Shown in pieces: positions 170 through 9,700 of a stretch of 64,000 nt of DNA (within the stretch, counting starts at the first letter, position 1; the number at the start of each line of letters is the position of its first letter). Source of the DNA: Ascidiella aspersa (Eukaryota); contig OZ004614.1 in NCBI GenBank assembly GCA_963924565.1, positions 23,126,001 to 23,190,000 of the forward strand, read 5' to 3'. A program made the translations under genes and the position numbers. The notes under the pieces were generated by a model. It was not told the DNA's origin, did not search any database, and worked only from the letters and a program-made list of their open reading frames with translations.

Positions 170-526
170 ATGAATTTCCAAACTTTTCGTAAAATAAAGC
201 TATCTTTTGTAACTACAGCAGAGAACTAGCAGTTCGACTTTTTAAGGCATAGTTATACAAACAAAAAACACACATAAAACAATAGATTAGATAGCACAAT
301 ATTCTGTTCCATCAAGCCTCACCAAAAGTATTTGTGCCGCAGCAAATACATAATTACTGGAATAAACCGTATTTTTGTCATGTTTTGGTTTTACATTTTG
401 TAAATATACTTTTGACACTATAGCAGAGAACTATAAGTTGGAAATTTTTTAGCGGTCACTAAATCCAACTAAAAAAACAACAAAAATATAGTACACAAAC
501 AAGAGAAACCATCAACCCTCACCAAA
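170..526. repeat. ~200-bp degenerate tandem duplication including the EGF7 exon donor
   Basis: ccatcaagcctcaccaaa (309-326) vs ccatcaaccctcaccaaa (509-526); agcagagaacta at 217 and 422. Confidence 0.7.
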
Positions 527-711
527 TGAGCAGGTAAGTCCGTTCCAGCCCAAATCGCATACGCAGAGTCCGTTTACGCACGCTCCGTGTTCTGCGCACT
601 TCGCCGGGCACTGTTTGACATCGCAAGCGTCGCCCGTCCAACCGTCTTCGCAGCGACAAGTTCCGTCTACGCACGTTCCGTGTTCCGAGTGACAGGCCGG
701 CCTACAGACCG
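523..711 (-). CDS. TENM: Teneurin exon: EGF6-EGF7 (AVCRPACHSEHGTCVDG...GWNGLTCSF)
   Basis: 189 nt, phase 1-1; acceptor cccttcccgtgctgccgcag, donor G|gtgagg; two complete 6-Cys EGF repeats. An alternative upstream acceptor exists at 762/765. Confidence 0.92.
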
Positions 712-3700
712 CTGCGGCAGCACGGGAAGGGTGGTTGAGATTGGTGGAGCCCAACTTAAGGTCTACTTGGCGGTGTTTGTTTTTATGTTTTTTTTTTGTA
801 TTTTTAGGTATTTTTTGGTAATTTTTTTGGTATTTTTGGTATTATTTTGGTGTTTTTTGGCGTTTTTTTTTTGGTATATTTTTGGTAATTTTGTTGGTAA
901 TGATTTGGTATTTTTTGGTAATGTATTTGTGTATTTTTATGGCAGGATTGTCAATGTTTTGCGAAATAGTTTGTAGCAATATTGTTACATTTTTGTGGTT
1001 TATCCGAGGTAGCATTATGGTGAATTACAGTGTTGGTGGTTGTTAAATGGTGCATGGTGGCAATTTTTAGTGTTTTTTGTGGTTTGTGTCGTGGTGTGGG
1101 AAGTTTTAGGAGACGAGAGTTTGTATAATTGTCGGAGTATTAGGATTGTGTTTTTTTGGTATTTTGTGGTTTATTTAGTAGGTTATTTATGTATTTGTAA
1201 ATTTTATAATTCAGGTTTTACGGTTGTTTTAAAGTTGTGATCGGTAGTATAAATTGACAAAAGGGGTGGGCAAATTTGATGTTCCAATGCACAAACCATG
1301 CACGATTAATGGCGATTATTTCGATTTTGAAAACATTTACAATATCATCGCATATCAAACAGTCGGTTTTTGAGTTCGTTTGGCGTATTTTTTATGTCGT
1401 CGTGCAAATGAATAATGACCGTGTTGTACAAAATGGTTCGGGATTACGATTTTTCGGTGGTGGTTTTGTTAGGATGGCACGGCAAGCAAAATTAGGAAGA
1501 GAGAGGATGGGAAAGGAAGAAGGAAAAAACAAAAAAGAGAGAAAAATAAAAAAAGGTTAATACTACGTCAAAACCAAGGCAAATAAATATGCAAAAACAC
1601 TAGTTGTTTTCTATTAAACAAACACACAACAAACGAATTTTGATTCATTCATTTCTAAATGACCTCACTCAGAGAAATGACTGTTACATGCCAAGGTCAA
1701 AATATAAAAAAAAAATATCTAAAATGTTGCTATGTAAAAAGTTAGGTATTTTCGCTTTTAAATGGGCTGTAAAACATATATTAAGTTTTTTTTAATAGAA
1801 AACCTATAATATAAAACAAATCCAATTGCTTAAAATTAAAAAAAACATTAACAACTTATCATCAAAATCATGCACAAAAAACAAACAAAAACACAAAAAA
1901 CATTCAAACGACATTTGTCGCAAATTAAACAAAACGCATGACGCGTATTCGTGTCAGACAACAAATACGTCAAATGGTAAGTTTTAAGGGTGACAAAAAA
2001 TCAACTAAACATGCAGTGTGTGAAAGCTACCTATGGTAACACGACTGTTTGTTTATCTTTGTACTTTTTCTATGTTTTGCCTGTGAGCAATACGTTATGC
2101 AAACACAATGTAAGTTAAGTATTACTACCACCCAAATAGCAAACGGTTATATCTACTGAGCAATCAAGGATTGTGTGAAAGCGGTGATAAAACCACCAAG
2201 TTTTTAAAGTTACTAACTTGTCTAACTCTAGTTTACCTATTGCTAACAAATTACAAAACGGGAAATTGGGAAAAAATTGGAAAAGTCTATACGGTCGAGG
2301 ACTTTAATGTCATTAATTGAATTGCAGCCGGGGTCACCAATTGACACTACAAATTCATTTAAGTCCACGCGAAAGTGCACATTCAAAACAGGGGTAACTT
2401 TTTTAATAAAAATAAACAAAAAAGCAAAACAAGATGAGCATTTTCAATAAAATAATAATAATGCCATAATATTTAAAAAAAATCAGCATTCCGTTGTTTT
2501 CAAACGTTTTGGTAATACATCATGCAATCTTCAGTGTAAAAATTCAAGAAACGTTTGTGAACGTTCGTATTTTCGAAACGTTTAGTAAACAACGAAAAAT
2601 CGATTTTTTTCCAATATTAGTGCTTTATTATTTTATTACAATTACTAAGTAAACCCGTGTAGTACAAATAAAAAAACAGCTCCTCCGGTAATCATTCACC
2701 CTGACGAAGGCGACTAGCATAGGTTACCGGAACGTTGGTAAAAAATTACAATTACCAGAGGAGCTGTTTTTTAATTTGCATTACTATGCCTGGTAGCAAC
2801 AGTTTATATAAACCCGTGTATTGTGCTCAACGAGAGCACCACACTTACCGGTTCTACAGTCGCTACCGCCCCAGCCGGGGTAGCAGACGCACTTGGACGA
2901 CACTTTGTCGAAGATGCCGCGTCCACTGCAGTCAGCTGGACAGCTGGTGTCAGGTTCCTTACAGGTCACTCCGACCCAACCGCGGTCGCAGCGACACACT
3001 CCAGCAAGACACAGACCATGGCCGGAACAAGTCGGCTCCAGGCAGTCAACTGAAAAAAAAGTCAAGTCAGATTGAGCAATGTTTGTGAAAATTGCAGTTT
3101 TCTTGGGAGGTAAGATTTAGCTGTTTGCGCTAAAGAATGCAGGTAAACGTTTTTTTCTGCTCTATTACGGTGAGCTTTTCACATTAGATTTATAAATGTT
3201 TGAATCAAGAATATACAACAGTTTTCATTTGATTGTTGAAACTGATACTCTAGTAAAACCTTATTATAAACCACTTCTTCGCACAAGATTCTTTCATATA
3301 CTCCAAGAATAAGATTAAAATCATAATAAAACAAACTTTGAAATAAGATCGTATTATTACCACGATATTGTTGCCCTTTAGGCCTTAATGAGTGTTCCAA
3401 ACAAAACAAAACAAAACAAAACAAAACAACACGTCACATCACTCACTTTCTTCGCACGAAATTCCCTTGAATCCTTCCTGGCAGACGCACTCGCCGTCGG
3501 CGCCGCAGGTTCCGTGTCCGGCGCAGTCGGGCTCGATGCACTGGTCCGACTGGGTTCCACAGTCTACCCCCTTCCAGCCGGAGAAGCACACGCACTTCCC
3601 GTGCGCGTACACGCCGTTACCACGGCAGTGGATAGAACAGGAGACTGGTGAGACAAAAAAACGGTTCTGTTGTTAAATCTCTATTTAAGAGTCCTTTTTT

Positions 3701-6700: not shown

Positions 6701-9700
6701 GTGGATCTACTTGTTGATAATGACGTCATTTGGCATCGGATCAAACGGACGCGTTTTTCGCCAAAAATGTCGGAACTCGAAATAAAACACCAAATATCGG
6801 AATTCCCTACATAAAAAAAACATGACAAAAAGCGAAGCGTTGGTTTACATAAGAGAGAATTTTTTTAAAAAGAGATAAAAAGAGAACGAAAAAAAAAAGA
6901 GAAAGAGATAGAGGCCCAGGTGCGGTCATATTGCGGCGGTCATTTGTCCAGCGCAGAGGCCGAGGCACTTACAATGCGCCTGTGGCCTTAATCTCCTCGC
7001 GTCCCGCTTGCAAACACGGTTCGGGGATTGACGATTCGGCGAGCCGCGAAATCCGAAACGTGCCCGGATCAAAGTTTCCAAGACCAGAGGCCGGGTGGCC
7101 ACTATGCTTTCCCTATATGGACACGACATAACGGAATGGCCGATTAGTCTTTTGCGGTCAGCTTAGACAAGCACTTTCCTATTTTTTGCCTGGCCGAATA
7201 CTAATATAGCTAGAATATTTTTTGTTTTGTCCCATTTTTAGTTTGCTTTTTAAGTTTAGAATTAGCACTTTCCTAGAATGATTGTTCTGTTGTTGTTTTA
7301 GTTTTTTCGTCTTCCCAAATCCTGGAGACATTCTGATGCCTAATAAAATAACCGTCACTTTGTACGTTGTTGACCCATTTTATAGTTTTTTTCTTTTATT
7401 TAGGTTGATCAGTGTGAAATTAGCACTTTTCCTCAAAAGGATTTTTCTGTTTTCTTTTGGTCTGCCCAAATTCTTTAGAATTTACGTTTTTTTAAGTTTT
7501 ATAGAGTTGGCACCTCAGAAGGGGGAAATTAGCACGTTTTTTTAGAAGGGTTTTCTGTTGTTTTTTTCGACAGTTTGAGTCCCTTATAAATGACGACTTG
7601 TTTTTCCACCATAATTTCGAGCTAATTTAACGTTTCTTAAAGCCCTAAAACTAAAAGAAAATTCGGTAAAAACGTAAAAACAGCCGTTAAGCTGTCCTTA
7701 AGTTGTCGTTAACTTTCTAGGGACCTCGTGAAGTTTTGAGCGAACGTCCTAGGCGGGATTTGGATAGACTAAAAGGATTTACGACCTGTGAGGGCTCGCT
7801 GAAAATTTGCTATTAAAAGACAAGGCAAGGCTTAAACGTGACAGACTTCAGTGTTTTGAATTGGTGAATCATTCTTACAAATTGTCTTCCACTTAAGAAA
7901 CAATATTTTAACGCACTTGTGTTTTCGTGCTGTTTCTCGTTTTTCTAAGTTTATTCTTTGCGCAGCATTCGTTTTATTTCGGGCATCCTAAAAGCGTACA
8001 GCGTCGTATGAAAGACATATATCTGCTTCTTCCGACAAAGAAAACAAACTACATGCTAGTCTTTTCACGGTAAAAAAAAATAAAATTTGATCCTCGGTTG
8101 CACTAACTAGAGTAGAGCATTACACAAATAACGGGGGGTAATTGAGGGCAAGAAGACCGGAATTTTTTTACGACTCATTTTCCGCAGGAAAGTGGATTAA
8201 CTTCCTTGCGTGCGCCGCTTTTTAATCTGTTTGCCTTTCGAGATTACGGGTCGGGTTGCACATAAACAGGTCAAAACAAAACATCAGGAGTCGCCTTTTT
8301 TCACGAAGTCGTACTCCAACTGCGAAAGCTGCGATTTGGTTCCCGCGTTAAAATCTGCGAGGCGTTAAAATGTGCGGCGCGCCGTCTTGAAAGGTGCTAA
8401 GAACAAAAACAGGTGAAATTTCAGCAGCGCAATAGATATTGCATTCCGCTCTAAAGACGCCTTTCGTGAAATACTTGAGGAATATTTCGGGCGATATTCG
8501 ATAGCCGTAATAGGCACAACGTCATAAGATGCCCCTTGGTACGAATCGCATTTCATGCTCAAAGCGGTGGTATTCAATCTAAACTCGAGATCGAATATCA
8601 CAGGAACGACTGGCGTGCGTTTTTGCGTTATCTGATTTCGAATTACATCGTTTTGTGTTGGACGTTAAGTGCTGACGCTGCTGCGAAAAAATGCAAAAGG
8701 TGTATAGGCTTACAACGCGTTCCATTTGGCTTATTGGGTTTAATATTAGGCGAAACACGGGAAACCTGTATTACCAGAGTTATTCATGCACTCCATAGCC
8801 TACAAAACGCCATTAAACACATTTTTTTATCGAGAAAATTTCTTACTCTATTGAAACAAAAGAAACAATAGTAACAGTGTTTTTAGAATTTGCAATTCCT
8901 TGCGTTTTTAGAATTTGCAAAAATTTCCATTTTAGAGAAAAAAGTTTGGCTTGAAAATCATAAAAAAAACGAAAAAAATAAAAGCCATCGCCCAAAACAA
9001 TTAACAGACTTACTGAACAAAAAAATCTTGTTTGAAAATTTCACGAAACCTAAGCATAAAGTCAAGAAACACTTATCATTAACCGCACCGGTTCGGGTTC
9101 AATTGTGTTCTGACGTAGGCCAACAGCTGACAGGATAAAGCTGGCCAGAAAAGCCCCGGAACCCAGGGGCGCCGTTGGACCCCAAGGGGGCCACAAAGCC
9201 CCAAGACTTACCCACAACCAATACCACTGAACTTAAACGTGGTTAAAATTTATGTACGACAAGTGCAATAGCGGAATGTAAGGTTAATGTTTAAGTGGCC
9301 TGTTTTTTTTCAATGGGTTTTGTATAGGGCGAGGTAAAGGGTTTTAAACGAAGGGCTGTGTTAGCGATTGGGCGCAACGGCGTTAAGTTAATCATGGGGT
9401 GTGCGCTGGACGTTTTCAAGTGCGCTGTAGTTGGAGCGTTCAATAGTGAGGTCGGTCCTACGCTTAAACTTGGCTTCACCGTGGAACAGCGAACAATAGG
9501 ACATTATTCTTAAGTCAAAAACGCGAACAACCTGCTATTTTTTGACAGTGAAAATAATCGAGCAAATCAAAACAAGTCTTGCTTCCATTTTCTGGCTAAT
9601 GTAAGAAAAAAATAGGTTTTCACTAACAAGAAACTGCAAGCGAATGTTAAGAAACTATAGGTCAACTATGGCTAAGGTAGAACAAAGTAAAAAAAAAGAA

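Follow-up and report, generated by a model that had tools for sequence, protein, structure and literature searches.

What keeps the dinucleotide AG out of almost 0.8 kb of an intron is the question raised by a teneurin gene of Ascidiella aspersa, which is encoded on the minus strand of the window analysed here (a stretch of 64,000 nt from NCBI GenBank assembly GCA_963924565.1, contig OZ004614.1, positions 23,126,001 to 23,190,000 of the forward strand; coordinates refer to this window unless another locus is named). In the intron separating the exons for the epidermal growth factor-like repeats EGF5 and EGF6, a long zone of the sense strand is devoid of AG, and this depletion is real, AG-specific, extreme and beyond chance. 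Most likely, it is an exclusion zone for splice acceptors, with about double the length of the longest verified example, and the locus is a candidate for an extreme member of the class of introns with distant branch points and AG exclusion zones (AGEZs). From this architecture we infer use of a branch at A1557 and control of the linker that follows EGF5.

The AG-free zone comprises 795 nt of the sense (minus) strand, from 1562 down to 768. It is preceded by an AG with its G at 1563 and followed by the AG of A767 and G766, the gap between these flanking dinucleotides amounting to 797 nt. With 339 A, 201 C, 200 T and 55 G, the zone is G-poor (7%) and A/C-rich, and its AG count of 0 is to be compared with 23.5 expected from base composition or 20-24 across methods. 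The residue before each G is T in 28 cases, C in 23 and G in 4. All other dinucleotides are present, of which GA (17), GT (16) and GG (4) occur near expectation, while CG (23) and TG (28) are raised because each G in the zone must follow a base other than A. Block shuffles of the zone (blocks of 25, 50, 100 and 800 nt; 5000 shuffles each) yielded mean counts of 19.7-23.5 AG, the lowest single count being 8. The analytic probability of finding no AG, given the local A frequency, is 8e-12. A composition-matched background of 1002 windows of 100 nt, in which A precedes 36% of all G and AG is absent from just 2% of the windows, yields 2e-11 for none among 55 G; altogether, three methods place the probability around 1e-11. 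The limits of the zone and its content of about 55 G had been given in the initial annotation and proved exact, and the concern voiced there, that AG-free runs of such length might be common after dinucleotide-aware shuffling, is dispelled by the shuffle minimum of 8 AG and the probability obtained.

On a larger scale, the zone was compared with a sample of 528 kb of strand-sequence (264 kb), consisting of the 64-kb window and 200 kb more of the 308.6-Mb genome. AG is slightly under-represented genome-wide (rho 0.88), and AG-free gaps follow an exponential distribution with a mean excess of 20-23 nt, from which the number of AG-free runs of at least 797 nt expected in the whole genome is extrapolated to between 1e-8 and 7e-11. 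In the window, the runner-up on the minus strand measures 193 nt, and the longest run on the plus strand 167 nt. Outside the teneurin gene, the longest run of the sample reaches 210 nt, which the zone exceeds 3.8-fold. Moreover, the edges of the zone are sharp: 48 AG occur in the 1286 nt upstream (one per 27 nt), none across the zone itself, and three within the 12 nt that follow.

Part of the zone is repetitive. A minisatellite with a degenerate 11-nt unit, (TACCAAAAAAA)n, occupies about 160 nt (780..942, minus strand); being G-poor, it lengthens the zone yet carries little statistical weight. Look-alike minisatellites elsewhere are not free of AG: on the equivalent strand, the one on C5 has 10 AG within 394 nt and the one on C2 has 3 within 116 nt. 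The complex part is significant by itself, as exemplified by 1462-1262 with 30 G at 35% A, and the repeat-poor and repeat-rich halves are each independently depleted of AG. Apart from the minisatellite, the zone is single copy in the genome, and a repeat or transposon origin was rejected on these grounds.

The 5' edge of the zone coincides with a putative splicing signal. The first base of the AG-free sequence is also the first base of the heptamer TATTAAC (1556..1562, minus strand), and the last upstream AG lies 1 nt before it. This putative distal branch-point sequence, with its branch A at 1557, matches UACUAAC at six of seven positions; the single mismatch still permits a G-U pair with U2, and the heptamer can pair with the branch-recognition sequence of U2 at all six positions. 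It is directly followed by a polypyrimidine tract of 63 nt (1494..1556, minus strand), which scores highest in the 528 kb of strand-sequence and contains TCTT three times, CTCTCT three times and TCTC four times. Just past the tract, three UGC (YGCY) motifs are clustered at 1477..1488 (minus strand), about 710 nt before the first AG. The start of the zone at TATTAAC and the subsequent TGC motifs, as originally annotated, were thereby borne out, the latter occurring three times between 1488 and 1477. Of the supposedly pure pyrimidine tract of about 60 nt, the length held and the purity did not, given that three purines leave 60 pyrimidines (95%).

The heptamer occurs 60 times in the sampled strand-sequence. 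Modules of heptamer plus tract are rare, numbering 249 in the genome (617 Mb of strand-sequence; up to 2 mismatches), without enrichment over a reversed control. Hence, the module alone is unremarkable; what is notable is that it falls on the very first base of the longest AG-free run, a coincidence not due to chance given that only about 250 such modules exist in 617 Mb. The second-best pyrimidine tract of the sample, measuring 48 nt (6867-6914, minus strand), belongs to a different intron of the teneurin gene and is part of a 161-nt AG-free run, which terminates at a TAG without any obvious exon behind it. A recursive splice site was ruled out, as no AG/GT follows the tract at 1494-1556, and a U12-type intron was ruled out by the GTAAGT donor.

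The identity of the gene as a teneurin follows from matches of individual exons to the Pfam families EGF_TEN, GBD_Tenm3, Teneurin_ABD and Tox-GHH. The upstream exon (2849..3049, minus strand) encodes EGF4-5, corresponds to EGF_TEN positions 94-158, has five cysteines in its EGF5 and is followed by the donor GTAAGT starting at 2848. The downstream exon of 189 nt (523..711, minus strand; phase 1-1) encodes EGF6-7, corresponds to EGF_TEN positions 162-220 and is preceded by the acceptor AG at 713-712, with a contig covering 523-712. The intron of 2137 nt is accordingly situated between profile positions 158 and 162, that is, between EGF5 and EGF6. The flanking exons match the profile on either side, in agreement with the earlier assignment to the teneurin EGF5-EGF6 intron. 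The dimerising (free) cysteines of teneurins reside in EGF2 and EGF5 (PMC11058771).

At its 3' end, the zone gives way to three AGs in close succession (755..767, minus strand), namely AAG with its G at 766, TAG with its G at 763 and AAG with its G at 755, the first two of which form AAGTAG (767-763), a candidate acceptor of the NAGNAG type. Between the TAG at 763 and the exon for EGF6-7 lies an exon-like segment of 51 nt (712..762, minus strand), in frame and free of stops, which would add 17 amino acids to the protein, or 18 from acceptor 766. Its GC content of 0.59 resembles that of the exons (0.60-0.61) and not that of the intron (0.32), and at third codon positions a value of 0.63 compares with 0.61-0.65 in exons. 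In terms of composition, the exon begins where the AG-free zone ends. Acceptor 712, on the other hand, yields the canonical spacing of EGF5 and EGF6. Upstream of it, at a distance of 23-24 nt, CTCAAC (734..739, minus strand) constitutes a candidate proximal branch site, similar to the CTCAAT upstream of the neighbouring acceptor 3050.

Which acceptor is used was evaluated with X3, an unlabelled run available as contigs that drop rare forms. X3 behaves as complementary DNA: it joins 3049 to 3447 and 711 to 2849 with GT..AG borders on the sense strand, and its depth across the neighbouring intron (3064-3396) is 0. The canonical junction from 2849 to 711 is confirmed by a spliced contig of depth 6.4. 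Across acceptor and zone, unspliced contigs cover 683-1198 (depth 11.3) and 1199-1667 (depth 12.7), and a further one crosses the donor (2783-2907, depth 10.1). Set against exon depths of about 19-23, these values indicate that about 60% of the molecules retain the EGF5-EGF6 intron in this one RNA-like run, whereas splicing of the neighbouring intron is complete. At 2864 and 2877, the alleles of the spliced contig agree with the reference, in contrast to the unspliced contig with 2864C, 2877A and 2831A; retention may thus be specific to one haplotype and reflect a cis-acting splicing variant. A depth of zero at 1954-2730 may reflect haplotype divergence or indels. Within the zone, X2 and X3 together reveal 11 substitutions and 3 indels, none of which creates a sense AG once phased, and the haplotypes diverge by 2.6% over 1199-1667.

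Long AG-free regions upstream of acceptors are an established feature of introns with distant branch points. By definition, the length of an AGEZ is counted backwards from the acceptor in use, and distances of up to 400 nt have been verified for distant branch points, as exemplified by rat alpha-tropomyosin exon 3 with its branch at -175 and human PTB exon 11 with an AGEZ of 381 nt and its branch at -351 (Gooding et al. 2006, PMC1431707). In these systems, the second step of splicing uses the first AG past the branch, the exceptions being AGs closer than about 12-15 nt to the branch or to one another (PMC1431707). The teneurin intron shares with this class a consensus heptamer suited to pair with U2, a U/C-rich tract next to it at the 5' border of the AG-free region, an ordinary AG density before that region and a link to splicing that is regulated or inefficient; the AG-free region extends far beyond the usual 40 nt, the putative heptamer and tract stand at its 5' end, and AG is normally frequent before it. 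The two differ in that the length of the teneurin zone is roughly double the verified maximum, 51 nt with three AGs separate its end from the observed acceptor, and its branch is read from sequence only. Hence, the scanning-type 3' splice site envisaged in the initial annotation stands as far as AG depletion, heptamer, tract and the normal AG upstream are concerned; the continuity with the acceptor does not, since the zone ends before the used acceptor 712.

Selection against acceptors downstream of a distal site competent for U2 would best explain why AG alone is depleted, and to this explanation, with the alternative-acceptor model included, we give an even chance. The distal heptamer and tract (1562-1494) would be able to engage U2 and U2AF, and the strength of the tract would support an AG-independent first step. 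Any new AG arising downstream would be taken as the acceptor of the second step and would add stop-containing intron sequence, so that AG-creating mutations are proposed to have been removed by selection. The distal branch would most likely serve the alternative acceptor 763 or 766, since the first AGs coincide with the start of the exon-like sequence, and would thereby add a spacer of 17-18 amino acids after the dimerising EGF5, while the canonical acceptor 712 probably relies on CTCAAC at -23 as its proximal branch. Given the length of the unstructured spacer, the distal route would be slow, which would fit the observed retention. In its most elaborate form, this proposal amounts to a switch between two branches, a proximal one paired with acceptor 712 and another about 0.8 kb upstream paired with acceptor 763 or 766, separated from it by about 800 nt of unstructured RNA, the outcome being the presence of a 17-18 amino acid spacer after EGF5; such a switch is rather unlikely.

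Several observations weigh against the use of a distal branch. The distance from branch to AG would be 794-845 nt, about twice the longest verified (up to 400 nt), and predicted folds provided no significant RNA structure that could shorten it or hide the AGs at 766-755: folding predictions leave the spacer unstructured (z = 0.41), and local folds at its two ends are insignificant (z = -0.69 and -0.10). According to the rule of the first AG, a branch at 1557 should yield acceptor 763 or 766, unlike the observed acceptor 712, and no junctions to 762 or 765 were found among the X3 contigs, which drop minor forms. The local signals of acceptor 712, the branch-like CTCAAC at -23 along with a C-rich tract, are ordinary and make a distal branch unnecessary. 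By the published definition, its AGEZ is only about 43 nt long, as the AGs 766, 763 and 755 intervene before the zone; with the junction from 2849 to 711, the zone does not abut the used acceptor and would be a true AGEZ only for acceptor 763 or 766. The insert of 17 amino acids would moreover be extra relative to the canonical EGF_TEN profile and EGF array. A raw-read RNA run, X4, contained 0 reads on the teneurin gene and hence no lariat reads. The lack of AG-creating changes among the variants within the zone agrees with constraint but discriminates weakly, as such changes make up 13-23% of its possible substitutions and about 2 are expected among 14 variants (P about 0.1). Finally, homology searches for the orthologous intron returned only three short fragments with 45-57% identity, on contigs of at most 1.7 kb.

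Some of these points would be accommodated if the heptamer and the CU-rich tract formed a decoy or repressive platform, binding U2AF and U2 or a PTB-type repressor without giving a product and thereby slowing or blocking intron removal; the intron would be a detained one, no isoform with 17 additional amino acids would exist, and AG would be excluded because any AG would convert the decoy into a harmful cryptic acceptor. We consider this possible but doubtful. It accords with the retention of about 60% beside a fully spliced neighbour, with the UCUU and CUCUCU motifs of the tract, which are typical of PTB sites, and with an acceptor 712 that has its own local signals and provides the 711 junction, the only one seen. 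However, the exact start of exon-like, in-frame sequence at the first AGs is left unexplained, the same search would lead even a true decoy to AG 766 or 763, and retention may be haplotype-specific instead of regulated. The 51-nt segment, exon-like yet intronic in the observed mRNA, speaks for another possibility, namely that the zone is a relic: branch and tract would once have stood beside acceptor 763 or 766, AG-free A/C-rich repeats would have expanded between them, only AG-free insertions being tolerated, and splicing would later have moved to the proximal branch and the CAG at 712, leaving the zone as a recent, unused leftover. The canonical EGF5-EGF6 spacing obtained from acceptor 712 as well as the minisatellite and other short tandem repeats inside the zone are consistent with such a history. 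A disused branch should nevertheless let AGs accumulate, as 13-23% of substitutions create one, yet none is found among the 55 G or in the divergent haplotypes, and the repeat-poor and repeat-rich halves are depleted independently; altogether, a relic is improbable.

Causes unrelated to acceptor choice were also considered, comprising a G-poor platform for RNA-binding proteins, an independent or internally initiated transcript (including an outron if the species trans-splices), and a strand-specific mutational bias. The strong G-poverty and A/C-richness of the zone and the RNA-like coverage through 683-1750 can be cited in their favour. G is not generally excluded, however, CG and TG being enriched and AG alone missing, and to our knowledge no mutational process removes AG but not GA. 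Furthermore, such causes leave the start at a branch heptamer and tract unexplained, the zone has neither an Rfam family nor a predicted structure, and a transcript starting inside it would lack the teneurin signal anchor. A trans-splice outron in particular was rejected, as a product beginning at EGF6 would lack the membrane anchor. This group of explanations is therefore regarded as quite improbable. As for chance or a low-complexity artefact, about 160 nt of the zone do consist of G-poor minisatellite, and the 282-nt run found elsewhere in the gene (L013) is a simple tandem repeat of an AG-free unit; against a probability of about 1e-11 after composition matching, a genome-wide expectation of at most 1e-8 and a complex single-copy part that is significant alone, this explanation is next to negligible.

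Beyond the class of distant branch points, the preferred reading of an acceptor exclusion zone invites comparison with other systems in which tract and AG are set apart or acceptors alternate. A strong branch sequence, a long UCUC-rich tract, UGC motifs and AG exclusion together characterize the acceptors of neuronal microexons that depend on eMIC/SRRM3/4 (10.1101/2021.02.24.432780), and UGC motifs are enriched at the 3' splice sites of the eMIC/SRRM4-dependent class. The teneurin intron shares this set of motifs, the extended AG-free region and the location in a neuronal adhesion gene; in contrast, UGC lies near the acceptor AG and ahead of a microexon in those cases, within tens of nucleotides, and here it is about 710 nt away from the first AG, with a downstream exon of 189 nt (240 nt if extended). 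REPA elements separate the pyrimidine tract from the 3' AG and have been connected with intron retention and with alternative 3' splice sites (PMC6339879); as in the teneurin intron, an intervening element uncouples tract and AG, but REPA elements are described there as short and rich in purines and G-tracts, whereas the teneurin spacer measures about 700 nt and is poor in G but rich in A and C. Tandem NAGNAG acceptors (PMC3250501) resemble AAGTAG at 767-763, where both sites are in frame (+18 and +17 amino acids); unlike those, the sites here are candidates, and the main observed acceptor is located 51 nt further downstream. In vertebrate teneurins, splice insert A places 9 amino acids between EGF7 and EGF8 (PMC11058771). 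The putative insert would likewise be a short, alternatively spliced spacer in the EGF array that alters dimer geometry, but it sits after EGF5 and is unrelated in sequence.

With respect to homologous genes, an exhaustive representative search for teneurin orthologues was swamped by tenascins and other multi-EGF proteins. In the genome itself, a teneurin/tenascin-type EGF array on C9 (L009/L010; C9:26452200-26454600, plus strand) is a candidate paralogue only, with 36-50% identity to the EGF6-7 exon. Its exons are compact, about 400-600 nt apart, and its introns of 300-450 nt include no counterpart of the EGF5-EGF6 intron. The exons of the teneurin gene are all small (at most 261 amino acids), a look-up in a protein atlas returned bacterial clusters of the Tox-GHH/HNH-like type only, and an Rfam search of the zone identified no known RNA family.

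The same intron harbours two further features. A candidate in-frame microexon of 12 nt, flanked by aacag and gtgagg, is present at 1669..1680 (minus strand), and the distal branch A follows 111 nt downstream; the X3 contigs contained no junction to the microexon (1680-1669), and steric mutual exclusion was dismissed, as a distance of 111 nt from donor to branch is not limiting. Just past the donor, a repeat of very high copy number extends over 2620-2841, with many loose ends at 2731-2813 and a word depth of about 47,000 in X1 and 99,000 in X2 versus about 50-100 elsewhere; it is probably an element resembling a miniature inverted-repeat transposable element.

Two other AG-free runs were noted. 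At L013:5507-5788 (minus strand; C8:23101507-23101788), 282 nt lack AG within a 60-nt minisatellite of about 4.5 copies that arose by tandem duplication; about 50 nt separate the end of this run from a candidate acceptor (ttttgcag), close to or just past the 3' end of the teneurin gene. At L011:549-748 (minus strand), 200 nt of a GC-rich coding exon of the same gene are without AG where base composition predicts 11, a figure to be read with the reservation that mononucleotide expectations overstate surprise in coding sequence. In addition, CpG is not depleted in the 264-kb sample, and its observed/expected ratio of 1.05 points to a genome with little germline CpG methylation, if any.

Should the distal branch be in use, the intron would feature the longest natural distance between branch and acceptor on record and would offer a clean in vivo test of how far the AG search of the second step can reach along unstructured RNA. 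It would also endow a synaptic adhesion protein with a lineage-specific spacer isoform after the dimerising EGF5, by analogy with splice insert A of vertebrates. Without use of the distal branch, the zone would still document, over 0.8 kb of intron, purifying selection of unusual clarity acting on one dinucleotide, and would be useful as a natural marker for a 3' splice-site element, cryptic or decoy, that is tied to intron retention.

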